This document shows, one piece after another, positions 6,149-56,660 of a DNA stretch of 64,000 nucleotides. The position numbers and the translations under genes are program-made. Within the stretch, counting starts at the first letter, position 1. Each line of letters opens with the position of its first letter. Under the pieces are notes generated by a model, which saw only the letters and a list, made by a program, of their open reading frames with translations, ran no database searches and was not told the DNA's origin. The stretch comes from Podarcis pityusensis. Its lineage: Eukaryota. The stretch lies in the NCBI GenBank assembly GCA_964106645.2, contig OZ078259.1; one strand, given 5' to 3'.

Positions 6149-6690
6149 TGTTGTTGTTTAGTCATTTAGTCGTGTCCGACTCTTCATGACCCCATGGACC
6201 AGAGCATGCCAGGCACTCCTGTCTTCCACTGCCTCCCGCAGTTTGGTCAGACTCATATTTGTAGCTTCCAGAACACTGTCTAATCATCTCATCCTCTGTC
6301 GTCCCCTTCTTCTTGTGCCCTCAGTCTTTCCCAACATCAGGGTCTTTTCCACGGAGTCTTCTCTTCTCATGAGGTGGCCAAAGTATTGGAGCCTCAGCTT
6401 CAAGATCTGTCCTTCCAGCGAGCACTCAGGGCTGATTTCCTTAAGAATGGATATGTTTGATCTTCTTGCAGTCCATGGGACTCTCAAGAGTCTCCTCCAG
6501 CACCATAATTCAAAAGCATCAATTCTTCGGCGATCAGCCTTCTTTATGGTCCAGCTCTCACTTCCATACATCACTACTGGGAAAACCATAGCTTTTACTA
6601 TACGGACCTTTGTTGGCAAGGTGATGTCTCTGCTTTTTAAGATGTTGTCTAGGTTTGCCATCGCCTTTCTCCCAAGGAGCAGGCGTCTAC
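6149..6690 (-). mobile_element. RTE-BovB LINE, 5'-truncated 3' fragment
   Basis: Minus-strand peptide RRLLLGRKAMANLDNILKSRDITLPTKVRIVKAMVFPVVMYGSESWTIKKADRRRIDAFELWCWRRLL...; (CAA)n tail; TSD tgctgggggtggt (6136-6148) / tgttgggggtggt (6691-6703). Confidence 0.93.
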
Positions 6691-8291
6691 TGTTGGGGGT
6701 GGTAGATGCCCTAAAGAAGAAGTGGCTGCCATGTGGGGGCCGGTGATGGACAGAGGTGGTGGTCTCCTGCAAAATGTCCTCCTTTTCAAACCAGAACTCT
6801 GTGAGCAGGCGAAAATGTGAGCAGCTGCTGTTCCACGCTCCACTGGGAGGTCTCCTCCAGCTAGCCCCACAATACTTAACCATCCTTACATGTGAAAGGG
6901 AACTAATTACTCCCAGGGAGAGTCTTAACCAGCTTAACCAGAAGGCTAATGATTTTGGGGGTAGGGGGATAGATATTGCAATGAGCGTCCAAGTCTTAAG
7001 GAGATTTCTGAAAGAGGTTGCAGGAGGAGGAGGTGGCTGAGTCAGGCCTTTGGTCACTCCCATCAGCCCTGGTTGGCATGGCCAGAGGCTAAGGGTCATG
7101 GTGAGAGTTGGGAGTTCCCATGCTGTAGTGGCAGCTCTCTAAGACTTGAGGTAGAAAAAAGGACCTTCCCCAGCCCCACCTGGAGGTGGTGTTTGGGGCT
7201 GAACCTGGGAACTTCTGCCCCCTCCCTTCCCCCATCCAGCCTGCTGAGTCCTTCTTAACCATCAGCTGTGTCTTCCTTTGCCTCCCCGGGGTGGCTGTCA
7301 TCTGTGACTTGTTCTCTCCCTTGGCCTTTAGCAAAGAGTGGGGAAGTAGCAGCAATGCTTAGAACCCCCAGAAAAAAAACACAGGCAGAGAGAAAGTCAA
7401 ACTATCTCAATTTTAAAAGTAAAATAACAAATGGGAAGGCGAGGGGAGGTGGGTGGGTGCTGTGGGGCTACCCACAGGTACCACATTGAGTGTGTGGGTG
7501 GGGACCCAGCTTTAAATAACACACATTTGGTTTTCCTGCTGCCTTCTGTGTAGTTTATTATTTTAATGTGATTTTATCTGAAATGTTGTGCTTGCTAGCT
7601 GCCTTCTGGACCCAAATTGCACAGGGAGGTGGGATCCCAAGGACAGCATAGAATTGTAGGGTTGGAAGGGACCCAAAGGGTCATCTACTCCAACTCATCT
7701 AGTCCAACCCATAGAACAGAGCAACCTCTGGGGAGGGGCCCTTCTCCCTTCCTGCCACCTGTCCTGAACCTCAGTTCCTATCCTGGGTGCAGGGTGGGTT
7801 CCAACCTTATTGTTGTTTCCCAGACAGTTTTTGCAATACCAGACCTGAATGGCAATACAGCAACTGTAAATCTCTAAGAGAGAAAGGATTACATCTGATT
7901 TTAAGCACAATTAGAAATGCAAGTGGAACACTTTGTATTTCACCTCATCGTCTACTATTTATGGCACGATATGCAAATAAACCAAGCTATGAATATTAAA
8001 CTTGTAAACTCTTTCTCTGCCTCTTTGAAGGGTGCAGCTGGGGGGGGGCCTTAACCACTGGCTCTGATGGCTCAAGGGGGCCCTGTCCACCCCAGAGCTT
8101 CCCTTGTGGCAAGAGGAAGGGAGGGCTGGAAACTACCTAGATGAAATGGGTTCAATCCTTGGGAGATCACAGAATAACAGGATTGTAGGACTGGAAGGGA
8201 CTCAAGGGTCATCTAGTCCAACCCCTTGCAATGCAGGAATCTCAGCTAAAACATCCCTGACAGATAGCCATTATGAGTCAGTTGATGAAGA

Positions 8292-8893: not shown

Positions 8894-9701
8894 TGCTAGA
8901 GACCCCCACCCTGCCCTACTGTGTAGGAGGGAGTATGGAGAAATCTGCTATCCAACCTCCTCTTCCCAGGACAAGCTCCTGTGTGGAGGCTCTTGCTCCA
9001 GCTCCCTCTGAGAGAGAGAGGGATTCATGGGAAGGGAGGCAGCCTTGTGGGCACACGGCTGCTCTTCCCCAGATTTGTGCTGAGATAAGCACCCAATTTG
9101 CTTTCTGTTGGTGCAAGTGAAATGCCCATAGTAGCACCCCTGTTTTGTACCTTCCCATCAGCATGCAGAATAGTGGCCCCCAGTGAGACCCAAGGCAGCA
9201 AGACCCACTGCTTGCCTTGGAGGCAGTGAGACCTACACTGCTCTTTGACTATGTTGCTCCAGGGCACCACCTCCAGATCCTGCTCTTTGAAGTCTAGTCT
9301 CTCCTTTGCCTGTTTCTGTTTGATTCTCCAATGTGCTTATGTCGGAGCCCCTCATCCAAGGCTAGTTATTCTTTGGGGCTACTATGTCAAGGTAGCAAAT
9401 GGCTAATTGTTACATTTTGGGGGTGCAGTTTCATGCTTTGTTTTGTGGTCCAGGGCCTCAAGCTGGCTTGGGCCATCTCTGTGCAGCTTTTGTTGCACCG
9501 TCTTCCTGAGTAGGGCCCTCCTCCCTCTGCTGATATCTGTCCCGCAGGTGGTATTGTGAAAGGAAATCCCAGATTCTTCCCTGTGGAGCAGCAGCACACA
9601 TGTGCCCCCTGCTCCCAGAAGGCAGGGCTTGCTTGTTCCTGGGTAGAGTCTGGCCTTGCTGGTCACAGAAGCAGGCAGAGTACTTCGATGGCTGCGGGCG
9701 T

Positions 9702-9703
<2 letters not shown>

Positions 9704-9739
<36 letters not shown>
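9704..9739. repeat. (GT)n microsatellite
   Basis: Direct read. Confidence 0.95.
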
Positions 9740-9741
<2 letters not shown>

Positions 9742-10089
9742 AGTGTCACAGTCTCCGTGAAGAACAGACATGGCTCATGAATGCAAATGGAAAATATGCC
9801 AATCTCAGCATCGTAGTTGCATGTGATAAATACTATTTGCATATCATTTTCCTGACTTTTATGAGCATCTGAATACAGTTTCGCTTATTCTTCAGCTTCA
9901 TAGCTAGCAGATTGGGAAGGTATGAATGGGGAATGTGTTTCAGCTCTTACAGCAACATACAGGCCCGAGTCTTTTTTCATGCTGATGTGAAGTTTCAGAA
10001 CCAAACAAGGAAGGGAATCATCAGGCTGCCTCCACCTCCAAGCACCTGAAGGACCACTGATTTATTTATTTTTGGCGGGGTGTGTGTGA

Positions 10090-10808
10090 GCTTATTGTTG
10101 GCATCCACCTGTCTCCAGAGTGCTCCTTCAGGGGTGAAGTTAAACCATTGCATTAGCAGCACCGAAGTGATTTCGCTGGGGAGTAACCAGTGTATATGGA
10201 GGTCCAGGCTGTCCATATGGCAAGACCCCCCTCTCAGCCTTGCTAATGTGGTTCAAAGAAAAGCAGAACAATATGTTTGGCATCAGCTTGGCTGCAGGAG
10301 TTGTCAGGAGACACTCAAGGCATCTTCCAAGCATCTTAGGGACTCCACTCTGGAATTGTGTAGGGTTTACTCCTTAGCCTTTTCTTCTCCCAAAGAAGGC
10401 AGCAGGGGTTTAGGATCTGAGTTTTCCATCTCCTAGTTGAGCTTCCTTCACAGGTTGATGAGCTCCATCTGCCCCTCACTTCCCTCTACAGCATGTGCAG
10501 AAACCGCCTTCTTGACCATTGGACCCACTATTAGACTCTCTTCTCAGTCTGCTGGAGCCTGTCTTCATATGCAGGTGACGTCCCTAACTCACTTAGGTTT
10601 TAAGAACCATCGGCTACTCTCACCTGGTTTAGCTAGCCAGTTGAAGCTGTTTCCTGGGGTGTGGCTGCTGTTGCATGTTGACAGCTTCTAGGAGCCACAG
10701 GTGAGAGCTGAATGCAGGGTGGGGACCCCAAGGTGGACAGACTACCCCCAAAGGAGCATGATGTGTCCCCATCCAGAGGTATTACTCCTCCCCTAACACC
10801 CCATACAC
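10090..10808 (-). mobile_element. Bipartite non-autonomous RTE-derived element (5'UTR fused to 3' end)
   Basis: 10150-10305 matches the 5'UTR of the RTE at 18385-18535; 10092-10148 matches its 3' end at 13990-14055; no ORF between. Confidence 0.72.
10617..10802 (-). ncRNA. Candidate HDV-like self-cleaving ribozyme at the RTE-derivative 5' end (decayed copy)
   Basis: Minus strand: P1 GGGGTGT/ACACCCC, P2 CTCTCACCTG/CAGGTGAGAG, P3 GGC/GCC, L3 starting TCC, GG just after P1, weak P4 hairpin, J4/2 GCTAA. Confidence 0.55.
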
Positions 10809-12311
10809 TCTGGGTAGTGAGAAGCCCACAGTCATTCATCTTTTTGCATATTTCAATAGGGACTAGCAATGTCTTGTTGCAAAAACCTAGACTCACAGAA
10901 ACCCAGCCTAGGAAAAGAGTTTCAAGGTTGAGGTCATGGGCAGCAAACTGAGAGCAGCAGCTGCAGTAGGACCAAAGAGCAACCAAGGATACAGGAACAC
11001 ACCAGGGTGGGCTGAGGAAGACCTTGTGGCTCAAGCAAGGTCCAGCTGAAACAGCAGCCTTTTCAACCCCTTCCTGCCCATGAAGGTCCAGTGGCCAGAT
11101 TGGGTGGGGGGCAGAGTGTGTGACTTGTTGCAGTTCTGTGGCTTACTGCATGGGACAGCTGCATTCAGGCCCAGCAGTTGCTGAGGGAGTCCAGAGGCTG
11201 GGGGGGGGCATCCAGTTATCCCCCCTCCCTGAATTTTGAAGGGGGTGGTGCTGCGAAGGTCAGGAGGGGGGAGACTGGGGGAATCCCACCTGAATCTGGC
11301 CTAAGGCTGCCTTGTAGCCTTTGGCTGATAATCCAGATGGGGGACACTATGCTCAGGTTCCTGTCCAGTGTCATGGGAGGGAAGGAGAGAGAAGCGCCTC
11401 TACAGACCCTGCAAAAGTGAGTCCCCCAGCTACTTGCCTGCCTGCCAGCCAGCCAGCCAGCCAGATGGAGGAGTGAGCTGCCTTCTGCCTTTTCCCTTTC
11501 CCCTACCTTAAAAAAAAGGGGGGGACCCACCCGTCCCCATTGCATCAGAACTAGGCAGCATTCCTGGTGCTCTCATGTCTGTTTCTGCTGACTCACAGAG
11601 TAACTTGCTGAAGGGAGAGAAAAAAACAACCACGCAAAGTTCAGGGCTGGACATCCCATCCCACCATACTAGGCAATGAGCTGAAGCAAGAAACCGCCTG
11701 CTAGAGGAGAGAGAGGGTGCGAATGCAAAGAGGTATATTCCTCTTCTGCTTTGCTGTCCTGGTGCATTGGGGAGGAGGTTTGAGGCCAGCCGGCTAGCCC
11801 AGGGGCTTCTCAGCAAATGCTGCCTCGGTGGTTCTGCTCCGCATCTGCTGCTCTTGTCCTTGTGGTGGTTGCCTGTAGACTTTGGGCATCCAGCCTCCTC
11901 TTCCTTCTTCGGGGTTCCTCTTTTTGAATTGGGACCCTTCGGTACGGCATGCCTCTTCCCATTCTTTTCATCTTCACCTGAAATCTTGAAATGCCAAGGC
12001 TTGCCCAGGCACTATCGGCACTGTGAACCACCCCCATCCCTTCTTCTGAATGCTTCTGTACTATGAAGGTGGGGGGAACCCCACCCCACCCCAACTACAG
12101 CTCCCCTCCTTGGCCTCAGTATCTTGGTCAGCATTCTCTGTAAAGGTAACATTGCTTTGGGGTTGTTTTTGACACCCTCCAGAAAATGGCTGTGGTTTGG
12201 GAGGCATATTAGTTGGGAAAGGTGGTTAGAAGGCAACACTGTCTTTGGTTGCTTTCCTCCTTGTGGAAGCTGTAATCAGTGTTTGGGCAACTTGCTCTGT
12301 TGGTAGCAGGT

Positions 12312-12505
12312 TACTTAGGAAGCCACCTTATACAAGATTGGAATGTTAATCCCTGTAGCACAGTGTTGTTTCACTGACAGGAACCAGTGGCTCTCCAGGG
12401 TTTCAGGCAGAAGGCAGTCTCAGCCCTTACCTGGAGATGCTGCCAGTAGGGCTTCAACCTGGGACCTTCTGCGTACAAAGCAGGTGCTCTGTCACTGAGC
12501 TAACT
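12312..12505 (-). mobile_element. tRNA-derived squamate SINE (Squam3-like)
   Basis: Reverse complement begins TAGCTCAGTG...AGAGCA...CCCAGGTTGAA (A/B boxes); related decayed copies near 990, 7120, 24480, 42530. Confidence 0.6.
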
Positions 12506-12755
12506 GGCTTCTTCCTCTAATGTTTTGCCTTGATAACATCTTTCCCCAGCCTTTCTGGGCTGATGGAGGGGGGGGGGGGAGAGAGGGACTATAGAGTGCT
12601 CTATAGAGTCATGAGAGCCCTGCAGCTGGACCTGCCTAGAGGCATTCTGTTCTCACAGAGGGAAGCCAGATGACTAGTGGGAAGCCCATAAGCAGGACCT
12701 GTGTGCAACAGCACCCTAGCTGAACCACCCTGTGATCTTCAGATGAAGGGCAGTA

Positions 12756-12997: not shown

Positions 12998-13732
12998 TAT
13001 ACAAATTTAATCAATAAATAACAATAAAATTGTCCATTTGACGCTTTGCACAATAGCATTTGATAGCCTTGTCCTCTGTTGGAGCCAGTGTTGTCTACTC
13101 TGGCTGTCAGTAACTGTTCAAGGTCTCACCCAGCAACTCCTCCCTCTATTCCTTTTAACTGGAGATTTCTGCCTTGGGGGATTGAACCCGAGGTCTTCTG
13201 CCTCCAGAGCTGCTGCTATGCCACTCAACTGTGGCTCCTTGCCGTGGATGAAAAGTGACCACTTGTCAGCTTTTTGGAGAGCAGTCCTTCAGTGCCTGCA
13301 AACCTCATTGATTTCAATAGAACTAGAGTTTCTTAACAGAGTGCAGGATTGCAGTGCATAGGACCCAATCCAGAGAGTGTTATGCATCTTTAAGGTGCAG
13401 CCACAATAGTTTCCCCAGGAGGTGGTTGGAAGCCAGGCTCACAGGTCTGGATCTTGCATTGTGCTAAGTGGTGCATCTTCACAGCCAGCAGTGTGGGGAT
13501 TTTAAAGGGTTTGGGCAGCTTTCCCCCTTTCCGCTCAAAAGTGCTGAAAGATAGTCGGGGGGGGGGATGGCTTTTTGCACACAAGTGCCACCTGGGGGGC
13601 TCTGTGGATTTCCCCTCATACCTGAAAACTGAAGGTAGGCCATACAAGCAATACGGTAGGCTGCTCCTGCTGCTCCTTGAAGTTTAAAAGTCCCTGAGCT
13701 GCAATCACCACAGCATCCTTCAGTTCATACTA

Positions 13733-13954
13733 CAGTAGAACCTCCACTTACCACCGCCCCTACTTGCAAACAGTTCGACTCGCAACCACAGCAAACCCGG
13801 AAGTAAATACCGGGCTTGCCACAATTCACACACGCACACAGAACGGTGCTGCCACTGAATGCACACACACAGAATGGCGCTTCTACCAGTGACCCGGATC
13901 AACTCACGAACGGACCTCTTGAATGGATTCCATACATGAGTAGAGGTTCCACTG
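13733..13954. mobile_element. Tc1/mariner-type MITE
   Basis: TIR CAGTAGAACCTC / GAGGTTCCACTG flanked by TA. Confidence 0.8.
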
Positions 13955-13957
13955 TAC

Positions 13958-13989
<32 letters not shown>

Positions 13990-16009
13990 TTGTTAAAATC
14001 TCTCTGTCTCAGGAGACAATGGAGGAATGTGCCTTTGGGGTAAAGTCAAACCCTTGGAGAATTACAGTGTCTGCTGTGGCTGTAGAGATTGATGCAGGAG
14101 AGAGATGTGTTATTGTAGCTAGGGCAGATGAAGGTGTTAGTGATCACTGTTAGAGATGTATCATGGCATTTCTTCTCTTTGCCCTCCTCCCAGCAATCAT
14201 TCCTCCTCTGGTCACTGCTATGGATACGCGACCTGTCTACAGGCACTGTGGTCATTTGCAAGAGATTATCACACAGCAGGGTTGATGTCACCAGCCATCA
14301 TGTCTTGTTTGCAGACATCTATGTAACACATGGTTGGTCTGCTAACAGGCCTGGTCCCTGTAGCCAGCTCCCTGTAGAGTATGTCCTTGGGGATCCTTCC
14401 ATCTTCCATTCTGTGGACATGGCCAAGCCAGTGTAGACATCACTGAGACAGGAGTGTGAACATGCTTGGGAATTTGGATTTGGGAGAGCATATCTTTGTT
14501 TGAGACTCTGTCCTGCCATGTGATGCCCAAAATCTTCCTGACGCAGTACATGTGGAAGGCTTTGAAGCATCACTCCTGACAGCTGTTAGTTGCCCTCCAC
14601 TCACTTCCATAAAGCAGCATGCTCTAGATGCAAGCCTGGTAGACCTTCATCTAGGTATTGGTCATTAGCATCACATTCTCCGATACCCTTTTGGAGAGGT
14701 TGCCAGAGCTGCCTTGCCAATACACTTGTCCAGCTGAGCATCAGTGGAGAGGTTGCTGGTTATGGTGGAGCCCAGAAGCACAAAATTGTCTATAACCTTA
14801 AGCGTTTGGTCACCAATGCTGATGCATGGAGTGCTGGCAATGTCCTGCCCCAGGATGTTGGTCTTTGTCAGGATGATGGTAAGGCCGACCTCCCTGCAGG
14901 CTTGGGCAAGATGGTTGATAGCCTCTGTAGAGCTTCCTTGGAGTGTGCTGTAAAGGCTGCTTCATCTGCAAACATCTCTCTGATAAGCACCCGCTGCACT
15001 TTTGTCTTGGTGCGGAGACATGATCATTTTGTGAAGCTTTGGTGGGCACCACATCTTGTTGAGCAGTGTGAAGAGCCTGTTTTGGCTGATGAGATCAAAG
15101 GCCTTTGTCAGGTCTATGAAGTTGATGTACAAGAGGCATCTCTGCTCCTGGCATTTCTCCTGCAGCTGAGAAAATCATGTTGACTGTTGACTTCTGAGCT
15201 CTAAAGCCATGTTGTGGCTTGAGATAAACCATGTTGGCGAGTGACTGTAATCTGTTGAGAACTACACAGGTGAAGGCTTTCCCCACAGTACTCAGTGGGG
15301 AGATTCCATGTTAGTTGTTACAGCCATGGTGGTCACCTTTGTTTTTGTAGAGGGTCACAATGCTGGAGTCATGCATGTCTTGTGGCATAGATCCTTGTTT
15401 CTAACACTGCAAGATAAAGCCATGGAGGTGCATCATGAGGGAGGAATTGAAGCGAGCTTTCAGCACTTCTGTTAGGATTCCATCCTGTCTTGGGGCTTTA
15501 CCACATGCTTGAGAGTTGGTGGTATTCTTCAGCTTGTCAAGGAAGGGAGCGACATCCCACTCTTCCAAGGCAGGCAGGCAGGACACTGTTGACTGCTGTG
15601 TCAGAGACCATGTTTTCCCATGAGTACAGTTCTTGGTAGTGCTCTGTCCATCACTTTGTCTGGTTGCTGCAGTCTCTGATGATCTCTTCTGGCAAAAGTT
15701 TTTAGTGATGCAGTTTTCATGACTGTTGGTCCAAAAGCTTTCTTCATGCCATTATACATTTTGCGAGTGTTGCCAGTGTCAGCAATGAATTGAATGCTGT
15801 GACACAGCTTTAGCCAGTAGTTATTGGCACATTATCTGGCAGTGTGCTGGGCATCACTCCTTGCCTTTCTCAGTGTAACAGGTGTCTTTTTGCAGCGCTT
15901 GTAGTTCAGAAGAGCCTTGCACTTTACAGTGATAACAGGCTCCATGTCCTTCATGCCAACCTCAAACCAGTCTGGGAACTGTTGGTCTCTTTTGCCAAAG
16001 GAGGATATA

Positions 16010-16936
16010 CCGTATTTTTTGCTCTATAAGACACACTTTTTCGCTCCTAAAAAGTAAGGGAAAATGTGTGTGCGTCTTACGGAGCGAATGCAGGCTGCAC
16101 GGCTAAGCCAGAAGCCAGAACAGGGAGAGGGAGCGTTGCGCAGTGCTCCCTCTCGCTGTTCTAGCTTCTGGTTTAGCTGCGCAAAGCCTCCGCAAGGCAG
16201 CGGGATGAAGGCACCCCACTGCCCTGCAGAGGCTTCATGGGCTGTCCCAGAAGCCAGAACAGCGAGACGGAGCGCTGTGCTCCATCTCGCTGTTCTAGCT
16301 TCGGGCTTAGCTGCGCAAAGCCTCTGCAGGGCAGCGGGGTGCCTTCATCCCACTGCCCTCCGGAGGATTTGCAGGCTGTCCCAGAAGCCTCCGCAGGACA
16401 TGGGGATGAAGGCTCCCTGTGCCCTGCGGAGGCTTCGCATGAAGCTACAACAGCTAGAGGGAGCACTGCGCAGCACTCCCTCTAGCTATTCTGGCTTTTG
16501 GAAAGCCCCGCGAAGCCTCTTAGGGCAGTGGGACGAAGGCTCCCCACTGCCCTGCGGAGGCTTCGTGCAGCTCTTGCGGGAAGTGGGGGGAAGGGACAGA
16601 GCGCGCGGCTCTGTCCCTTCCCCCACCTCCCAGAAAATCCCCCAAGAGCCGCGCTCCCTTTAAAGAGCACGCAGCTCTTGCGGGAGATGGGGGAAGGTAC
16701 AGAGGGCAGCTAACCCACACGCAGACTCTTCCGGGCAGGGGGAGTCTTCATCCCGCTGCCTGGGAGAGGCTTCAGCGGCTATCCCAGAAGCCAGAACAGC
16801 AAGAGGCTATCCCAGAAGCCAGATCCCTCTTGCTGTTCTGGCTTCTGGGATTCAGAATTTTTTTCTTCTTGTTTTCCTCCCCCCATAACTAGGTGTGTTT
16901 TATCATCTGGTGCGTCCCATAGAGCGAAAAATATGG
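16010..16936. mobile_element. Tc1/mariner (Tc2/Tigger-like) non-autonomous element with internal repeats
   Basis: TIR CCGTATTTTTTGCTCTAT / ATAGAGCGAAAAATATGG, TA on both sides; inserted in the RTE. Confidence 0.82.
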
Positions 16937-17608: not shown

Positions 17609-18837
17609 AAAGAGGCCTATGCAGTTGTCCCATGTGTGATGATCACCCCCTATTCTTGCATTGAAACCTCCCAGCAGAAATAGGTGTTCACAGTCTGGGA
17701 CCCTCCTGACAGCCTGGTCTAGTTGCTTGTAGAACTGGTCCTTGGTTTGTATGTAAGGGAACATAGTGGGAACATAGACACTCAATATGTTAACTGGACC
17801 GAAGGTGGTTGAGAGGTGGAGGGAAAGCAAGTGTTCTGAGCCCTCAGCTGGTTCTGTCGCAGACAGAAGAGAGTTCCCCACTGTGAATCCTACGCCATGA
17901 ACACATGTGTCTTCCGGATGACCTCCTTGCCAGAAAATGGTGTAGTTCTTCTCTCAGAGTCTGCCATTCGAAGCGAGTCTGGTTTCCTGTAGAATGGCAT
18001 GTCAGTGTTTGAATTTTTTCAGATCACAGTCTTCCATGAGTCATTAACTAGCAGCAGTTCAGTGGACGAGCGAGGACACATGGTCTTGACATACCAGCTT
18101 GCTAGGTGCAAGAGGATTTGTCTCTTTTATTTTTTACCTGGTATAGTAGTTTGGTCTGTTTCTTGATTGATACTCTGAGTTTCAAGCACCCACTGAAGCA
18201 GGTGGACAGTGGCAGGCCATCACTTTATTGACCGAGGGCTGTCTGGCTTTAGGTGGGCAGTAGCTGACAAGTGAGACATGATGATCTCTCCCACTGACGA
18301 AAGCTACCCATTGTGCTCGTACCTTACGTCAATCAGACTGAGCTTATAACTCATAACTTCTGCTTCCTGCGTTTTTGCTGCGTTTTGCAGCATTGAAGTG
18401 ATCAGGGCATAGTCCTGGGCAGTGTGTATGGAGGTCCTGGGCTGCTCAGAAGACAAGACTCTTACTGGCCATACTGATGTGGTGCAAAGGAAAGCAGAGA
18501 AATATGTTTGGCACCAGCTTGGCTGCAGGAGTTGCCTGACAGAGGTATATAGTTAGAAGACAACTGGCCAGACATGTACATGGCTACAGAACTGCTTTTT
18601 TACTTGCAAATTGTTTTTTAGTTTAAAAATACTTTACCCTTCTCTCCAGCAAAATGATAAATGTGTTTTAGCATCGGGGCAGCTGAAGCAAACCCCACAT
18701 TCCTATAGTCATGTTAGTGCTATAGTTTAAGTGAGTTTAAAATGTGAAAGTGCAATACACAAAGAGTGTTTTGGGGTTTTTTATTAGGGTTGGTAAACCT
18801 CTGTGTTGTATCTAACCAAGTTTTTACTCAGAAATTA

Positions 18838-23520: not shown

Positions 23521-24358
23521 ATGTCGCAGATGCTGCACATAGAAATCCCCAACTTTGGGAGCACCGTCCTGGGCTCCCTGAATGAGCAGCGCCTCCTGGG
23601 TCTCTACTGCGATGTCTCCATCCTGGTCAAGGGCCAGGCCTTCAAGGCTCACCGGGCTGTCTTGGCAGCCAGCAGCCTCTACTTCCGAGACCTCTTCAGT
23701 GGCAACAGCAAGAGCGCCTTCGAGCTGCCGGGCTCCGTGCCGCCCGCCTGCTTCCAGCAGATCCTCTCCTTCTGCTACACCGGCAAGCTGACCATGGCTG
23801 CCAGCGAGCAGCTGGTGGTGATGTACACAGCAGGCTTCCTCCAGATCCAGCACATCGTGGAGAAGGGGACAGACCTGATGTTCAAAGTGAGCTCCCCTCA
23901 CTGCGACTCCCAGACGGCCATGACGGAGGAGCCCTGCTCGGGGCCCCAGAGCCCCTGCCACCCCCTGCAGCCGCCCTCCCTGCCCTATGCTGTGTCGCCT
24001 TCCGTGCCCCTTCCACTGCTCACCCGCGTCAAGCATGAGACCTTGGAGCCTGCGAAGCGGTCCTTGGAGTGCAGCCTGCGGGAGGCGGCCGGGGGCAGCT
24101 CCTCTGCCAGCGCCCCGCTCAAATTGTCGCGCGTCTCCTACTACGGGGTGCCCAGCCTTGCCACCCTCCTCCCCAGCATCCCGCTGGCTCAGTACTGCCA
24201 GGGGGAGCGGACGAGCCCTGGGGCCAACAGCCTCCCCACCACCGACAGTCCCACCTCCTACCACAACGAGGAAGATGAGGACGATGATGAAGCCTATGAC
24301 ACCATGGCGGAGGAGCAGTACGGGCAGATGCACATCAAGTCCACAGGCGGCTATGCAG
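23521..24358 (+). CDS. NACC2: NACC2 first coding exon (BTB/POZ domain + linker)
   Basis: [55 protein letters not shown]... is a BTB domain matching vertebrate NACC2; acceptor ctacag at 23461-23466, donor GCAG|gtaaaa after 24358 (phase 1). Confidence 0.97.
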
Positions 24359-26465
24359 GTAAAAAACCCCTTTAGCCTCCGCCACTTTCATTCTCATGGG
24401 ACCGTAAAATGAGAGGCATCTGCAGTCAGGCAGGTGTTCATTTCCCTGCATTTTAGAAAAGTAGTTCAGTAGGTGGAGTGTCTGATTTGCAAGCAGTTGT
24501 TTTGATCCCCAGTTGGCATCTCCAGATAGGGCTGGTAGTAAATCCCCTGCTGGAAACCCTGCTCAGCCATCACTGCCGGTCAGTGTTGGTAATACCGAGC
24601 TGGGCAGACTGATGTCCTCACTTGGAGTAAGGAAGCTTCGCACTGATTTAAGACTTGAAAACTTGAATGGGAACAGTGCTGAATGCAGCTTATTTCCATT
24701 TCGGGGTGAGGTCTCTTATTTCCTTCCCTCCTGCCAGATATAGGTCTCCAGGCTCTGTGAATTTGTTGACAGGGAAGGCATTTCTTAGTAAGGAGTAGTT
24801 CATTTTTCAATAAGATGTTTTCTGGCGGGAGGGACTGGATCTCTACATGTGAATCTGCTGAAGGTGCCATTGTTGTCCCTTTGGTTCCTTGCGGAAAGTA
24901 ATAAGCTCTTAATTTCTGCAAGCTTATTGATGGTGTCTATTTCCTTATTTGGGGTGTGTGTGTGTGTCTGCATGTTCAGAGTTTCCTCCTCATTTAATGA
25001 AACTGGCAATGCAGCATTACTCTATGGATCAGTTTCCTTGATGCCGACAGATTTTAAGGATTGCATATTGAGCATAGCAAGATTGTTGAGCTCTTTCTCT
25101 TGGTCCATTTTCTGTAGCTTAAGGAGCCTGGAAGCCCAGCCCAGGCAGATGTCTCCTCTCCTTCCCAGGAGAAAGAGGCAAGATGCCTTCAGGCAGGATT
25201 GGGAATGAGGTGCTGGCTTTGGAGCTGTGTTGAGGTGCTGTGTTCTAAAACCAAAGAAGGGGTGACAGTGTGACTCTACAGTCCAGGCCACTGTGGGTCA
25301 GTGTGGTACTCTTGGGGTCATGAAAGAGCTTGTAGGGCAAGAGACACTTTATGGGCAGCCTGGATGCCCCCCGCCGACCCACTGGAGAGACACATTTCTA
25401 GCCAAGCCAGCAGGATTTTATAGCCAGAGCCCAGCTAGGTTCTATGTCCATTGATCAGCTAAATTTTGTGGGTGGCTGACAGGGTGCTTGGCTGGCAGCA
25501 TCTCATGTGCCCAAAGTATGTTAGCTCGGGGGTAGGGGGACCTCACTTTGCAGGTGTATGAAAAAGCTGGGAGTGTCCAAAATGTCAATGTTCTAATTTG
25601 ACCAGGCTAAAACTTTCCCTGCCTGTACAGATAGTTTTGGTGCTGAGGAGCAGGTGACTCTCCAGGGTCATCTTGTCCAAAGGTGGACCTCCTTTCCCAG
25701 GAGAAACTGAAATCCATCCTTCAAAGCTCACTCAAAACTTAAAACCCTGAGAGAGTGAAGCCAATCTGGTTCACTCAGAGACAGTGATTCCTTGATGTGA
25801 GTCGTATGCCAGGGAAATAACAGCCCACCAGGAGCACCTGGAGCACCTAGTCCAGCCCCCCAACAGGTAGCTCAGCGGGAAGGAACCTGTGGGCAAGACC
25901 TGCTGCCAGCAGCAGCAGCTCTCCCCACTAGCAGTTCCCAGCCACTGGCATTCAGAGGCCTACATATTACGCACTTCTTTAAAACATTGATCAGCCAGCC
26001 ATGTTAAAGTTTATTTTGTGCAGTGTTACTTATTTGTTTATTTCGTAACTTTTATATACCGCTTGATTGTCAGAAAAATCCTCAAAGCGGTTTACATAAA
26101 GTTGCTAGTGTTTTGTGTTCCGTTGCATGACGTGCACCACCCTATCAGTCCCTTAGGAAATGGCGTCATAAATATTTTTACTTATAAATGAACAATAAAT
26201 TCTGCCTTCAAGAGTGGAGGTAGAACATAACCAGTGTGGCCTGGCTGTAACCATTGGGCCTACTTCCCCAACCCTCTTGTCAGGATCTATTCACATTTCC
26301 CGCTGCTGCCTCTGCAGAGCAGGGGTCATTTGCCGTGGCTGCTTCTGCTTGGCTTCTTGGCCCAAGAGAAAGCGGGGTTCCTGCAGCCTCAGCCATTTGG
26401 GATACCCCGGGGTTTTCCCTTACAATCCTGGGTAGCTCTTTCATGCCTCCCTCCTTCTCCCCAAG

Positions 26466-29289: not shown

Positions 29290-30904
29290 GTAAGTGTGGA
29301 GAGGAAAAGGAGAAGGAGCCTCTGAGGGTAGATGGAGAGCTATTCGGTTTATTTTACATCTTCCTTTAGTTGTGACTCCTGCCTTGCAGGAGGTTGGACT
29401 AGAAGACCTATGGGTCCTCTGCAATACTGTAATCTACAATTATAATTAAGAGACTCTTGCTCTACCGACTGAGCTACTCTATTATTCTAAGGGGTCTGGA
29501 TTCAAATGCTCCTTCTAAAAAGACACCAAAGCTTTAAAATCCTGCATTTTGGCGTCAGAACCCTGTTTACTGCCTTTTTGAAAAACTGTTTTTTATTAAA
29601 GATTTTATTGGGTTACAAAGGTACATACGTTATCTCTGTTTTCAGATCATAAAGTCCTTTCTACAGGGCAGTTCTATTCAATGTGAGACAGTAATGTTGT
29701 AGACAGTATAAGGTTGGGGGAGAAGAGAGGGGGGAATGTTTACTGCCTTTTGTATGTGCTGACAAAGTTTGTTTTTAAGTCAAGGCATGAGAGGGAAGAT
29801 CTTTGAGTCATGGGAAGATCTTTGAGAGGGAAGATCTTTGAGTCTGTGGCCACAACAGATTTTCTCTCTACTAAGCTATTTTGTGGCAGCCCCAATTGGT
29901 TGAGCTCCTCCTGCTTCATGAAATGCTCATTGTCTCATGACAGCAATGTGGAAAGAAGCCCCAAACAGGGGACCCTCTTTAGAATGTTGTCCCTGGTTGA
30001 AAGGGCAGGCAGAGAGGGGTGTCAGGGAATTTGGACACTGGCGGAGCCAGGCCAAGCCATGTTGGCTGAAAAAAGACTGCTGAGATGTCATGAGCCAGAA
30101 GGGGCCAGTCGGAAAGTCACTTGGGAGGGCGGTGCTGGGAGGGAGAAATTTGCACTTCAACTGTATCCTCAAGGCAACTTGCAAGAATTAAATAGTTCCA
30201 CTAGCAAATTAAAATGCAGCAGCATAAATCTGATAAGGACAAATGAGACCAGATGCATGCAGAGCCAAAGCAGAGGGTATGCTCTAAAGAGTGTGTGCAG
30301 TTTTGCTTCGGAAGGCGGGGAGCCTGCCTGGGCTTCTTTAAAAAGAAGGGGAAATTCTGCCAAATGAAACTTCTACCACTACAGGATTATGTCCTTCTGT
30401 GCAGCTCTTGAAGGACTTGGAGGCTCTCTCAAGGTCTGGACTTGGGAAATCAAGGCCTGAAAAGCAGTGTAGGGTTAGGGTTCGTGACTCTGGCAGCTGC
30501 ATGACTGGGAGAATTGGCTCTGAAAGGGGGATGAGGAGAGGGAGGCCTTGAGTTGAGCAATGCCAGAGAGGCTCTCAATAAGTACAAGTTGTTTGTCATC
30601 CGCAGAGGCTGGGTCTGGTCTTCTCTGTGCTTGCTTGCTAGTTTCCTACCAGCCGGGTAAGGTGTGATTCAAGCTGTTGAATGCAAATCTGGAAGCGTTC
30701 AATCTTTCTTTCTTAAAATAGTGAATAATTCACAGTCTACTATGGGACCTTCCAGCACTGTCTCCTTATCTGTGCTGGATGTTACGAATCTTGTAAAGGC
30801 GCCTTTATGCAATCTGTAATTTTACGGCCATTGTTCCTGATGCTGAAAAAAAAATGTTAAAACTCTTCCTCTGTTGTAGCTAAAACACCCCCTTGTCTTT
30901 GCAG

Positions 30905-31419
30905 TGTATTGCCAGAATTTTGCCCCAAGTTTCAAGGAGAGTGAGATGAACGTCATCGCAGCCGACATGTGCACTAATGCCCGCCGGGTGCGGAAGCGGT
31001 GGCTGCCGAAGATCAAATCCATGTTGCCGGAGGGTATGGAGATGTATCGGTCCGTCATGGGCTCCACTACCAGCAGTATCTCCCTGGACCCTGAATTCCA
31101 GCCTTCCGCTGCTCAGATGTTCGAACAGCGGATCTATGCGGAGCGGAGGGGGGATTCTGGAACCATTGTGGCACTGAGAACTAACACGGTCACTGTGGAT
31201 CAGAGCAACAGATCCAGCCAGCTGTTTGAGCCGAATGAGCAGGGGGAGGGAGCCAGTTCTGTCATCCAGGAGTCTGCTGGCCCAGAAGCAATGGCTTTGG
31301 AGAGCCACAGCACCACACCGCCTTTCGAACAGGGCCCATCTGGGTCCACTAGCCGGCCGGAGACTCCGGCAAGACGACCGGAAGGCCCCTACGGAGGAGG
31401 AGGAGGAGGGACTTTGTGA
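30905..31419 (+). CDS. NACC2: NACC2 last coding exon (BEN domain end + C-terminal tail)
   Basis: tttgcag|TG; encodes [44 protein letters not shown]...GGGTL* ; exon total 1725 nt = 574 aa + stop. Confidence 0.97.
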
Positions 31420-32237: not shown

Positions 32238-35200
32238 AAGGTGAGCCCAGGGCTCTTTCTGGCACAGCAGAAATGATTTGAATCAGGTTGGGCACATGAC
32301 ACCATTTGTGGGTGTCATGGATTTCGTCCTGAGGAGTATTGTGTTTGTCTGGGTGTGTGGCTGCACAAAACATTCCAGAATGACTCCCATGATACAATTT
32401 GGCCTGCTCTTAGATACAGGGGCATCTTTGAGCTTCATTTTGTTTAATGCTGAAATTTTGCTGGCAGAGATGGTGAAAGGCAAAAGCTGCTTGGGCTGGG
32501 CAGAGGTGCCCCCCAGGGGGCTAATACTGAGGGCCTCACTCTATCCTGATGCATCTCATGGGACCGGGGAGGGAGGTTATTGTTAGCATTGAGTGGTGTG
32601 TTGATGGAGGTGGAATATGGTAAGGCTCTACTGGGCCAGAGTGTGGGCTGCAGTTGCTGTTCTTGGCATTTCTGAAGGCATTTCTGAAGGAGCAGACAGG
32701 GAAGAGAAAATAGATCAGAGGGAGAGGAGAGAAGGGAGTCACTAACTTGAGAGTTTTGTGGCACACTTGGCCAGAATGGATGTTTTTGGTGGCTGTCCAA
32801 CCCTACCCCAAACCCTATTGTTCCTTTTTAGGAATCTGTGTTTTCCTATTTAATCCCACTCTTTTTTTTCTTTCTTTTTTTTTTTTTGAGAAGGCTCATG
32901 TAAAATATGAGAACAAGTTTTTCATTTCTGATGGCTTGAGCTGCTTTGTCTGGTAGGGTGTTTCTTAGAGGGGTACAGCTCAACTTTCACATCTGAAAGG
33001 TGTTGGGTGCAGAGCGAACTTTGGCCAAAGGAGAACCAGCATGTGTGCAAGAGGCAGAGCAGGTTGGAGTGGGATCTGGGCTGGGGAAGCAGGCAGGCAG
33101 CCTAGCTTGCTTTTTGGGTGGTTGTGTGTCAGGGGGAGAGCAGCCTCATTTTTGCTGCACTCAGTACCTCCCCCTAATATATGTCGGACAGGCGTGGCAG
33201 AGGAGAGAGTAGGGGGAAGCCACCATGGCCCGACTGGGCTATTTCATAAATGGAAGGGCAAAGAGGCCCCTTCTCTGGTCTCTGGTTGGATGGCCGTTGC
33301 AGGGGGTTGCCTAGATTACCCTTGGGGGTCCCTTTCCTCTCCACAGTTCTATAAGGGAAAGGTGCTTTTGCTCTGGGATCTGCCCCTTTTCCAACTCCAA
33401 AATGGGTCCTTGGCAGCCATCCCCTTAGCCGTTCTAGAATGGTTTATCCCAAGATTCAGTCACCTTGATTGAAACACAGGAGCTACTGGAAGGCCCCCAC
33501 CTGGTATGTGAGAAGGGTGTGCTGCTTAGGAATCTCTCGCCTTTCCTAGCCCAAACCCTTCTTGATGTAAGGGTTTGTCTCTGCTTTTCTAGGCAGGATC
33601 CCTGTGTGGGTTTCTGGGAAGGGACCACAAAGAGCAGGCTCTTGAGGGGGGAGGGGAGACATACTGAGTTTGGGGGGATTTTTCAGGTGCAGAAAGCTCA
33701 GGACAGTGGGAGCTTCTGAGAGCTCTGCAATGGGTACTTTATGAGCTCCAGGTGAGGCTCTGTGCTGGAGCCAATGGCATGAGGTGTTGCGGGGTATACT
33801 CTCTTCCTGGGGGTTCCTCCCTTTGCCATGTGACCATGGAGGCTTTGGAGGGAGTCCTTGCCTTTGGCCAATATTTGAAACTTCATTCTGGGCCCTGAAT
33901 AAAAAAACTGTGGTCCCTGATCTGTACCAGTGCCACCCCACAAAGGATTAAAACCAGCTGAGCACTGGTGAAGTGGATGGGTGAGGCCTTGAGGAGGGGA
34001 AGGAGAAGCACCAGGAGGCTGAGCCAACTGTCTCCAGCCTTTTTCTGGTCTGGGATGCCTCTGTAGCTGCAGCTCAAGCAGGCCAGTGGCCTATATAGTC
34101 CATCCTAACCTCAGTGCTTAACCAGTTGCCTTTTACAGGAAACTTGCAAGCACTGCCCTTTCCCCTCATGCAGTTTCAAGCAACTAGTAGTTGGCCTGGT
34201 ACTCCCACAGGTCCTTGGTACCCTTGCCCTGTGTGCCATAGGGAAGGCAAGGCAAGGCTTCATCCGGGATCTGGCATGAAGCCCTGGCAGTTGACTCCAC
34301 ACCTTCAAGGGCCTAATTCTGCATTTGCAGGTGAATGAGAACTTTTTGTTATCAGAGTGAGCAGTCGAGTAATGATCTGCCCTAGATGGTCCAGTGAGTA
34401 GGGGCAGCTCTGTGGGCAGTGACCCCCCCCTTCTGTATCTTTCCCTGAGTCAGTGGTAAAGGGGGATTGGGTCCATGAAATATGATGGTATCAAACTGAA
34501 AGGATTACTGCCTTTCTTACCTTGGGTCATTTCCTCTTCCAATTGCATACCCTACCCAAAATAATGGTGGTACAAAGTGCATCCAGGAGCTGTTCCACCT
34601 GCCCCTGGCCCCATGATGAAATGACCAGAACATAAAGAAAATACTTGAATGGCTTAGAAAAGAATCCGAAGAGAGTGTCGCATTGCACAGTTAAGATATA
34701 TTTTTATACCGAGCACAATTTCATGTACATTTTTATTTGGAGTTTCTTTGTTTGTTTTTACTTTCTAGTAAAAGAGAGAGAGAGCGAGAGAGCTTTAGGT
34801 AAACTTGAAAAAAAATGTGAATGGTTTGTTTTTGGGGAGGGGGGCCTTCCTTGTCTTCTTGATGAGGATGAGCATTTGCACTAAACCAGATCCGCATGTG
34901 GAGGCTTAAGGGCAGATTTCCAAGACGTATCTGTGGATCGTGATTGTCTCCTCCCTGGTGGGAAGGAAGAATGTCGCAAAATAAAAGAATGTAAAGTGAG
35001 AATGAAGCCCAGAATGATCGGGATTTCCTGAGTGCCTTAGCCCTTTTTGGATCACTTGTTTTCCATGCGGAGGGGACAGAGAGGGGGGGAAATGCCAGAT
35101 CAGGAGGAATGCCCCCCGCCCCGATTTCCCCCTCTTTGTTTACAATAATGCTAGAAATGTCATGAGAGTGTTTGGGAGTTGCTTTCTGACTGTGATGATG

Positions 35201-55338: not shown

Positions 55339-56660
55339 TATTGTCAAGAGTATGTAGCTTGTTGCTTGAATGGGATACTAAGGATGAAGACGTCAAATGT
55401 GTAGTGATAAAGTGGGCCAAAGACATGGGACATAATATCCAAATGTCAGATTGGAAAAAATTGTGGGGAAATGATTTGAAATTTACAGCTTGTACATTGT
55501 TAAAAGAAAATTATATGAAAATGATGTATAGGTGGTATTTAACGCCAGTAAAATTATCATAAATGTACAAATAAGAAGAAATGAAATGTTGGAAATGTAA
55601 AGAGGTAGATGGTACATTTTATCATGTGTGGTGGCAATGCAAAGTTATAAAGAATTTTTGGGAAAGGATATATAATGAATTGAAAAAAATGCTTAAAATA
55701 ACTTTTGTTAAAAAGCCAGAAGCCTTTTTATTAAGAATAACAGCAAGGGGAATACCCCAAAAATATAAAAATCTATTTATGTATGCAACCACAGCCACAC
55801 GAAAATTGATAACCAAATGCTGGAAAGAGGAAAAAATTTTCACGAAGAAAGATGGGCAAATTAAGTTGATGGAATATACAGAGGTGGCAAAATTAACAGG
55901 AAGACTCAGAAATCAGGATGATAACAAATTTAACAATGAATGGGAATTATTATTATTTTTGCATATATGTCAAAGCATTGTATACAAGTTGATACATCAG
56001 GATTTGAAAAACATTTGCAGTATTATGATGATAGATAAGAATTAGATATATACAGATGGAAAATATGACCTGGACATGCTTGATATAACCAAAAATAATG
56101 GAGCCATGGAGAGGGGAGAGGGAAGTCACAGGATGGGAAAATTCCCACATTGTGATATTGTATCAATGTTTATTTTATATGATGTTCATTATGGAAAAAC
56201 TACTTTAAAATTTTATTTTTTAAAAAAGAGACGAGCACCATACCCCATAGTCGATTTCAACTGGACTTAACTGTCCAGGGGTCCTTTACCTTTACTCTGT
56301 TGGCTATGAGCACCCAGGGACAGCTGCTCCCTCCTGCCCTTCAGGGGCCCAGTTTACAAATTATGGTTCTGTTTAGCCATCATTAAAAATAAGTGATGGT
56401 TCACTGCAAAGTAGTTGCATGCTTCTGTACTAATGAATCCTCGCTGGGTCCCTACACTGCTTCCTGTTAGTGCTACATCAGGGCATAAACAAAGCTGAGT
56501 CTGGCTCCCATCTTGCTGGAGTCAGGGCAGCAGAAAAGGTACCCAGTCCAGACAGCACTGGATTCTAGCTATGGCTGCCTGTCTGTCAGTGTCATGTGTG
56601 GAAGGTTGGCTGCTTTTGAATCTCATACCAAAAGGTATTCTCCACCCCTGTGTTAAGCCA

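Follow-up and report, generated by a model that had tools for sequence, protein, structure and literature searches.

Does the minus strand of this locus specify a self-cleaving RNA and, if so, with which nucleotide would that RNA begin? The locus lies in a 64-kb stretch of DNA from the squamate Podarcis pityusensis (64,000 nt, referred to here as the window), in which a retroelement copy of ~720 nt carries at its 5′ end a set of pairings resembling those of the hepatitis delta virus (HDV) ribozyme. An initial annotation of the window had proposed a ribozyme of this type, with an atypical hairpin in loop L3 and cleavage 5′ of G10802, at the 5′ end of a member of a squamate RTE family. The reading that we favour retains the fold and displaces its first strand. 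Positions 10811–10617 (minus strand) would represent an HDV-like ribozyme, self-cleaving in its undecayed form and eroded in this copy, located at the 5′ terminus both of the 5′ untranslated region (UTR) of a long interspersed nuclear element (LINE) and of the ~720-nt derivative; we give this reading a probability of roughly 0.5. Whether the family is, or was, self-cleaving appears to us evenly balanced on the sequences available. What the sequences themselves show is a repeat that has its leader in common with a LINE, a strand order that threads on all four copies, a ribozyme-like pattern of conservation and a limited amount of covariation; pseudoknot formation and catalysis, like the site of cleavage and a possible role as promoter, are inferred.

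The stretch belongs to an interspersed repeat. Logan contigs of two related organisms (X1 and X4) were aligned to positions 9700–11300 at a likeness of at least 80%. Their summed depth, which is not equivalent to copy number, is 10^3–10^5 across ~10080–10833 and ~11 (X1) or ~60 (X4) in the flanks (9754–10077 and from 10834 on). The segment ~10093–10811 is thus a very high-copy interspersed repeat bordered by single-copy DNA, and the difference in depth bears out the placement of the candidate at the 5′ end of a retroelement. Repeat contig pieces stop at 10801, 10807 and 10813 and thereafter continue as unrelated sequence, while a unique X4 contig ends at 10120. The depth of the 5′-most ~100 nt of the element is ~5–10% of that of the adjoining core, as expected from 5′ truncation or from the presence of subfamilies. 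No open reading frame (ORF) of note was found in the window copy, and a protein word search with one (spurious) ORF of this copy gave no match, nor did DNA pattern scans of genome-contig and viral-contig collections. Only one copy of the element lies in the window, where neither blastn nor nhmmer detected another besides a relative of 150 nt at 18384–18534, akin to the 3′ part of the element. The CpG observed/expected ratio of the window, 0.25, is of the vertebrate type.

A LINE sharing the leader of this element was found in marine metagenomes. A 20-mer from the conserved core matched two contigs in one metagenome assembly and protein and contig look-ups yielded more, the resulting loci coming from ENA assemblies ERZ1740055, ERZ4903303 and ERZ23487698 and from a TARA sample. 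Three of them (L001, L002 and L010) align with the window from 10806 down to 10496 (~310 nt) with ~70% identity. L002 is identical to L003, from another sample, and to L005; L010, from the TARA sample, is a contig of 920 nt only. ORFs for APE (endonuclease) and reverse transcriptase (RT) lie downstream of the shared stretch in L001 and L002/L003. A related locus, L006, encodes APE, RT and a C-terminal C2H2 finger, with which the ORF ends, for a total of ~1030 aa. The first ~310 nt of the element are the 5′ UTR of an autonomous LINE in the marine-metagenome contigs, and the window element, to judge from this alignment, is an ORF-less derivative which has retained ~310 nt of the LINE leader. A block of ~50 nt, from the 5′ strand of P2 to P3′, is nearly identical between the squamate and marine copies, the loop of the inserted hairpin included. 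Such likeness would reflect either a very strong constraint or transfer of the element between distant animals. Relatives of the LINE in the protein atlas are mostly chordates. The C-terminal finger may point to an Ingi/Vingi-type element.

All the pairings that the initial annotation had claimed are present on the minus strand where it had located them (Table 1). The HDV-like strand order which it had proposed (P1, P2, P3, L3, P3′, P1′, J1/4, P4, J4/2 and P2′) threads on all four informative sequences, namely the window copy, L001, L002 and L010, with 88.7–90.6% of the cells (a given pair in a given copy) paired. The long L3 with a hairpin of its own is likewise present in the window and recurs, at 27–28 nt, in every copy. 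In the model that we prefer, the 5′ strand of P1 would consist of the 6–7 nt with which the element begins, paired with the pyrimidine tract that adjoins P3′, and cleavage would fall just 5′ of 10811. J1/2 would be a self-contained hairpin of ~90 nt with the second G-run in its closing helix. P2 would contain 10 bp and P3 3 bp, and P4 would be short. L3 would begin with the canonical UCCUCG and then open into a three-way junction by means of an invariant 5-bp hairpin; P1.1 would arise between its CC and the GG that follows P1′, while the candidate catalytic C would lie in J4/2 (G-CUAA-AC). If it works as the ribozymes of R2, R4/Dong, Baggins and L1Tc do, it would cut read-through transcripts precisely where the element begins and leave a 5′-OH RNA as template for retrotransposition. 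An internal promoter may lie in the same stretch of DNA, a role which would explain why an ORF-less derivative has retained it.

Table 1. Features of the candidate ribozyme and of the element that carries it (window coordinates; identity is that of the window copy with the marine copies)
Feature	Position	Strand	Sequence, pairing or remark	Identity
Non-autonomous retroelement copy	10093..10811	minus	~720 nt, no ORF; 5′ end is the high coordinate; boundaries approximate, within ~5 nt	
Proposed P1 5′ strand, first 7 nt of element	10805..10811	minus	AGAGTGT; L001 GGGGGGC; L010 (T)AGGGGT	
Second G-run	10796..10802	minus	GGGGTGT; alternative P1 register or, more likely, 5′ half of the J1/2 closing helix	
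P1 of the initial annotation	10802-10796 x 10662-10656	minus	GGGGTGT x ACACCCC; 7/7 Watson-Crick in window copy	
J1/2, initial register	10795-10708	minus	88 nt	
J1/2, proposed	10708..10804	minus	~90-nt hairpin domain plus linkers; closing helices 10801-10797 x 10721-10717 and 10792-10789 x 10725-10722	0.57
P2 5′ strand	10698..10707	minus	CTCTCACCTG; 10 Watson-Crick bp with 10626-10617	0.97
P3 5′ strand	10694..10696	minus	GGC; invariant, 3 bp	0.89 (P3 + L3 start)
L3	10666..10693	minus	28 nt; UCCUAG, then AA, hairpin 10685-10681/10671-10667 (GCUGU/ACAGC), A	
P3 3′ strand (P3′)	10663..10665	minus	GCC; invariant	1.00
P1′	10656..10662	minus	ACACCCC; marine copies ACCUCCC, AUCCUCC, ACCCCUC	0.67
J1/4	10653..10655	minus	AGG; GGG, GGU or GGA in marine copies; GGG in another squamate copy	
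P4, decayed	10635..10648	minus	AGCU 10648-10645 x GGCU 10638-10635 in window	0.60
J4/2	10627..10633	minus	GCUAAAC; candidate catalytic C at 10632	0.95
P2 3′ strand	10617..10626	minus	CAGGTGAGAG; pairs with 10707-10698	

Threaded in this way, 90.6% of the cells are paired and five pairs show compensatory changes, of which three belong to the terminal P1 and the other two to P2 and P4, one each. Shuffled alignments gave 1.4 ± 1.0 such pairs, a value of five being reached in 1 of 500, and slid controls gave 0–1. The change in P2 is from C-G to U-A in L010. Those in P1 involve a U-A pair in the window against G-C in the marine copies, an A-U pair in L010 and an A-U pair in L002, which may be flank. 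Substitutions are also unevenly distributed. P3, L3 and J4/2 are nearly invariant and P1/P1′, P4 and J1/2 vary, a pattern which fits a ribozyme as far as sequence comparison can indicate. It is the pattern described for R2 ribozymes, whose active site is conserved and whose P1, P4 and J1/2 are variable (PMC3774820). Where J4/2 does differ, as GCUGAAC in L010, the C is maintained; it is invariant across the copies. The first six nucleotides of L3 (UCCUAG in the window, UCCUCG in the marine copies) contain the U and the G of the signature trans G.U pair together with the CC of P1.1. In HDV-like ribozymes this U and the G five positions later (U23/G28) are described as perfectly conserved (PMC3386971), and in a related ribozyme the G25A mutation nearly abolishes cleavage (PMC13635239). 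The inserted hairpin has a 5-bp stem and a loop of 8–9 nt, both invariant in the four copies. In J1/2, helices 2 and 3 are fully paired in 4/4 copies and one inner helix includes one compensatory change; the contig alignment reveals deletions within J1/2 in squamate copies. The family majority has a G at 10618 (minus strand), converting a U-A pair of P2 to U.G as in the marine copies, and an additional T-A pair beyond the 10-bp P2 would require a bulged C10627.

The idea that the window copy has decayed by CpG mutation is also upheld, since the squamate family and the marine copies restore GG after P1′, a better P4 and UCCUCG in L3. The core is closer to canonical in the less decayed marine copies, where GG follows P1′ directly and P4 has 6 bp: it reads CGGCUU/GGGCCG with a 4-nt loop in L002 and L010, and the CpGs of P4 are restored in the loose-end consensus of squamate contigs before 10651. 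P1.1 is paired in 7/8 cells over the four copies, the unpaired cell being the AGG of the window. We attribute this AGG to CpG decay because another squamate copy, in which a joint connects 10532 to 10679, reads CCACACCCC then GGG (minus strand) at the same place. The window copy is probably inactive, to judge from two G-to-A changes in the terminal P1 strand, a G-to-A change at 10655 which weakens P1.1, and the decayed P4.

Five loci retrieved with the marine copies were rejected as further copies of the candidate: the region is missing from L007, L011 and L012, and L008 and L009 lack P1 and have lost the CC of L3. Assemblies of different samples contain one and the same LINE copy, without differences over the shared stretch (L001, L002/L003/L005, L008/L009 and L010). 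In L006, a second RT-bearing ORF (13250–15458) directly follows the first LINE copy, so that the copies in this contig are nested or tandem; since its long-read coverage is 4x, the frameshifts in the contig may be sequencing errors. L011 carries a long (TGTA/TATG)n-type microsatellite (970–1930) upstream of a related LINE, and this gives rise to spurious Rfam matches to mir-297 and mir-3149.

A number of observations weigh against the self-cleaving reading. The comparison includes only four informative sequences, three of them 82–92% alike. The terminal P1 register was chosen after the data had been seen; it pairs 21/28 cells, and since some 5′ columns of L002 and L010 may be flank, one of its compensatory pairs is perhaps accidental. 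The first P1 pair is G-C or a mismatch and never the G.U wobble which is typical of the cleavage-site end of P1 in HDV and CPEB3. L3 contains 27–28 nt instead of the canonical 7–8 nt, and in the literature accessible to us we found no precedent for a helix inserted in the L3 of an HDV-like ribozyme. Formally, the hairpin would replace one or two bulged L3 nucleotides by a three-way junction. Its invariance, loop included, points to a sequence-specific role, perhaps protein or DNA-level binding, over passive insertion. Rfam searches yielded no HDV-type match at E values up to 10 in the window segment 8000–13000 and in L001, L002, L008 and L010, or at E values up to 5 in L003, L006, L007 and L011; these negatives are weak evidence, as they are expected if the insertions break the covariance models. 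The 5′ boundary of the element is also not fixed by a target-site duplication: CTCACTACCC compared with CTCAC(ACACA)CCC is no better than shuffles, 60% of which reach the score, and was consequently not used for this purpose. RNA reads from a related species show no pile-up of starts at the element. The strand bias of RNA reads at 10564–10725 stems from diverged copies elsewhere and is thus uninformative on cleavage.

An observation of a different kind is a 245-nt contig (record 16 of run X15), with 97.5% identity, which covers 10773–11012 and hence the 5′ boundary of the element with both proposed cleavage sites uncut. The run is only guessed to be RNA, and the contig could stem from contaminating DNA or from a read-through transcript of the decayed window copy.

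A competing fold also has to be considered. The minimum-free-energy (MFE) fold of the window stretch leaves P1 unused, and RNAalifold favours a nested fold in which the 5′ part of P3/L3 and the P4 region form a helix of 17 bp; this fold pairs 93.8% of cells over 61 pairs. Within the domain enclosed by P2, the nested MFE ranges from −32.5 to −38.5 kcal/mol, and the energy of the HDV-compatible nested fold from −20.4 to −27.4 kcal/mol. The P1 duplex adds −9.6 to −11.8 kcal/mol to the latter, or −4.3 in L002, which makes it comparable to the nested MFE. The centroid structure of L010 retains the J1/2 hairpin and P2 only. On these predictions the nested alternative is at least as stable as the HDV-like fold.

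The nested fold is one reason for which we regard a second explanation as a serious competitor, somewhat behind the ribozyme: the stretch may be a conserved structured element of the LINE 5′ UTR which does not cleave itself, acting as an internal promoter, as a block of transcription factor sites, or as an RNA leader which serves translation or is recognized by the protein of the element itself. In that case the resemblance to HDV would be left over from an ancestral ribozyme disabled by the insertion in L3, or would be a coincidence in a conserved leader rich in G- and C-runs, and the non-autonomous element would have retained the stretch because it needs the promoter. The near-identical ~50-nt block with its inserted-hairpin loop fits sequence-specific binding, the GGGGTGT strand has a fully conserved local partner, and both the length of L3, far beyond the known range, and the lack of Rfam matches are what such a leader would present. 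The G- and C-runs permit many pairings; upstream windows at alignment columns 27 and 47, for instance, also reach 19–20/28 cells with P1′. Moreover, L006 is truncated just after P1′ and lacks everything 5′ of P4, yet its ORFs are intact. What a non-cleaving leader leaves unexplained is the 95% conservation of J4/2 next to a P4 conserved at 60%, the canonical register of the U, CC and G of L3, of the GG after P1′ and of C-N-A-A, and the compensatory changes between the first nucleotides of the element and P1′. No compensatory change was seen in the helices specific to the nested fold; of the one-sided changes in them, five preserve pairing and four break it, so that pairing is kept about as often as under neutral transitions. 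Promoter and ribozyme roles can in any case coexist, as in Pr77 of L1Tc (PMC3185411).

Within the self-cleaving reading, the question remains of which strand would form P1. The initial annotation had used GGGGTGT (10802–10796), with cleavage 5′ of G10802. In the window copy this register pairs 7/7 positions with P1′, it has the best duplex energy (−11.8 kcal/mol against −2.9 for the terminal strand, which reaches −10.5 in L001 and −9.6 in L010), and over the four copies its 23/28 paired cells are the highest count of all upstream windows. The other squamate copy described above, reading P1′ as ACACCCC before its GGG, is compatible with it too. Neither register begins with a G.U wobble: the initial one starts with G-C in 4/4 copies, the terminal one with G-C in L001 and with a mismatch in the window, L002 and L010. 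The initial pairing does not carry over to the marine copies, in which U5 faces C in 3/3, uncompensated, and G7 faces A in 2/3, leaving 5–6/7 positions paired; there is no compensatory change in the four copies. By comparison, the first 7 nt of the element (10811–10805) nearly repeat the GGGGTGT strand and pair with the same P1′, at 6/7 positions in L001 and L010. Among 143 upstream windows of seven columns, the terminal heptamer and the adjacent G-run are the two best partners of P1′, and the heptamer is the only window with three compensatory pairs.

The second G-run, for its part, has another partner: positions 10801–10797 pair with CACCY at 10721–10717 in 4/4 copies (CACCC in the window) and close the J1/2 hairpin. 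The GGGGTGT strand more likely closes this conserved hairpin than forms P1. The element itself does not begin there either. Four independent insertions share G-Y-M-T immediately upstream of G10802, flanks being unrelated beyond about −9, and two of the three squamate contig pieces displayed extend past 10802, to 10807 and 10813; the RNA templates were thus not cut at G10802. Similarity begins at least 4 nt and probably ~9 nt upstream of GGGGTGT, with no pile-up of element ends at that motif (an outcome which the initial annotation had counted as refuting), and the alignments indicate that the element probably starts about 9 nt upstream of the G1 of the initial annotation. With the terminal P1, cleavage is predicted to fall at the boundary of the element, to the precision with which that boundary can be placed. 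Nor was support found for the attribution to a squamate RTE family: the element region (9900–10900) is without similarity to the BovB/RTE fragment which lies nearby in the window, and the partner LINE ends in a C2H2 finger. We consider the original proposal in its exact form, with this P1, this cleavage site and this family, to be improbable.

The sequence match is, by itself, indecisive. A loose descriptor (G.U allowed; P1 of at least 6/7 within 250 nt; P2 of at least 7 bp; L3 of 7–30 nt with a UCCNNG start; GG after P1′; C-N-A-A before P2′) gave three matches in the real window and 0.30 per dinucleotide-shuffled 64-kb window. A scan restricted to Watson-Crick pairs (7-bp P1, 3-bp P3, P2 of at least 6 bp) returned ~50 loci in the window, of which one other (16794+, with a 7-bp P2) had the L3 CC and GG and none matched the 10-bp P2. 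An analytic estimate for a 7/7 Watson-Crick P1 combined with a 10-bp Watson-Crick P2 is ~4e-6 per window, which corresponds to roughly one chance match in a scan of 250,000 windows. The weight of the case rests on the position at a retroelement terminus and on conservation in distant copies. That unique or decayed DNA merely imitates a ribozyme by chance is accordingly very improbable in spite of the background of matches and is also disfavoured by the covariation, given that the repeat depth and the homologous marine leaders rule out unique intergenic DNA, that the motif set is conserved, and better, in LINE leaders from unrelated samples, and that the candidate lies within 10 nt of the element 5′ end. 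The two other matches of the loose descriptor, at 33747 (+) and 41936 (+), have an L3 of 10 and 17 nt and both look accidental; that at 33747 has no repeat or conservation context. Numerous loose matches to pseudoknot descriptors were obtained on both strands of 16064–16900, a GC-rich region with many inverted repeats and a 134-nt tandem repeat (2.1 copies, 16108–16389).

The window includes several other features. A 5′-truncated BovB-type LINE 3′ fragment with an ORF for the C-terminal part of RT lies at 6150–6700 (−); its 3′ end, of the kind typical for BovB, reads ...GAGTCGGACACGACTAAATGACTAAACAACAA and it is unrelated to the ~720-nt element. A tRNA-like Rfam match at 12440–12509 (−), with 33.8 bits for a gathering threshold of 29, is not called as a tRNA by ARAGORN and is probably the head of a tRNA-derived short interspersed nuclear element. 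ORFs at 23521–24375 (+) and 30904–31419 (+) presumably belong, by recognition only, to a NACC1/NACC2-like gene, of which they would encode the N-terminal BTB/POZ part and the BEN-type C-terminal region respectively. The candidate ribozyme lies ~13 kb upstream of the first coding exon of this putative gene (from 23521, +). Finally, a 154-aa ORF at 55581–56045 (+) resembles, again by recognition alone, what we assume to be the C-terminal cysteine-rich end of L1 ORF2.

Descriptors of HDV-like ribozymes fix L3 at 7–8 nt. If true, an active member with a conserved helix in L3 would show the fold to be structurally more tolerant than is known, and current searches, whether by structure descriptors or by Rfam, would miss such members and under-count the family. 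An abundant amniote retrotransposon family would then join the short list of vertebrate HDV-like ribozymes and, next to L1Tc/NARTc, be the second example in which a LINE and its ORF-less parasite have a 5′ ribozyme module in common. We tentatively suggest, with slightly less confidence than in the ribozyme itself, that these sequences represent an HDV-like subclass in which an invariant helix opens L3 into a three-way junction, J1/2 is large and structured, and the whole serves as a 5′ processing (perhaps promoter) module in a LINE lineage present in chordate-like contigs from marine samples and, as a non-autonomous derivative of very high copy number, in squamates. Even without self-cleavage, this LINE leader would stand out by its unusual conservation, with ~70% identity over 310 nt and near-identity over 50 nt between squamate and marine-sample copies.

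How does this candidate compare with known systems? The HDV L3 hexamer is UCCUCG in full, and J4/2 includes C-U-A-A in antigenomic HDV; the candidate has both, the hexamer in its marine copies. With the genomic and antigenomic HDV and the CPEB3 ribozymes the candidate shares the strand order, a 3-bp P3 and GG after P1′. The spacing of its U/G pair in L3 is that of U23/G28 in HDV (PMC3386971). It differs from HDV and CPEB3 by a hairpin insertion of ~21 nt in L3 after the conserved G, by a J1/2 of ~90 nt and by a first P1 pair which is G-C instead of G.U, and it is not matched by the Rfam models.

The ribozymes of R2 and R4/Dong are closer in their setting, lying at the 5′ end of non-LTR elements with a conserved P3, L3 and P1.1 and a covarying P1 (PMC3774820). 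Active R2 ribozymes tolerate a very long J1/2 (216–498 nt in silkmoths), a P4 which is short or absent and a J1/4 of 0–2 nt; their P1 has 6–7 bp with occasional mismatches at its top, and the 5′ junctions are variable if cleavage occurs at the element end (PMC3774820). Their L3 is short (15 nt for P1.1, P3 and L3 together, PMC3774820), whereas L3 here has 27–28 nt; and R2 is site-specific in 28S rDNA, often cleaving upstream in the rRNA, whereas the present family is dispersed.

The L1Tc ribozyme (Pr77) of Trypanosoma cruzi is common to NARTc, ingi, RIME and SIDER elements (PMC3185411). The core of the L1Tc ribozyme is minimal and its P1.1 consists of a single pair, for a total length of 77 nt; the unit here has ~195 nt, with a ~90-nt J1/2 hairpin and a helix in L3. 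Its host is a trypanosomatid and its activity has been shown, while the present family is known, from sequence alone, in a vertebrate and in organisms of marine samples. The likenesses concern the organization of the module. In both cases an HDV-like fold, putative in the present family, occupies the first nucleotides of a LINE, L1Tc cutting at element nucleotide +1, and downstream or alternative folds, inhibitory in L1Tc, compete with the catalytic fold (PMC3185411). In both, the 5′ module is retained by ORF-less non-autonomous derivatives, as in the L1Tc/NARTc arrangement, and a dual role as promoter and ribozyme has been proposed (PMC3185411).

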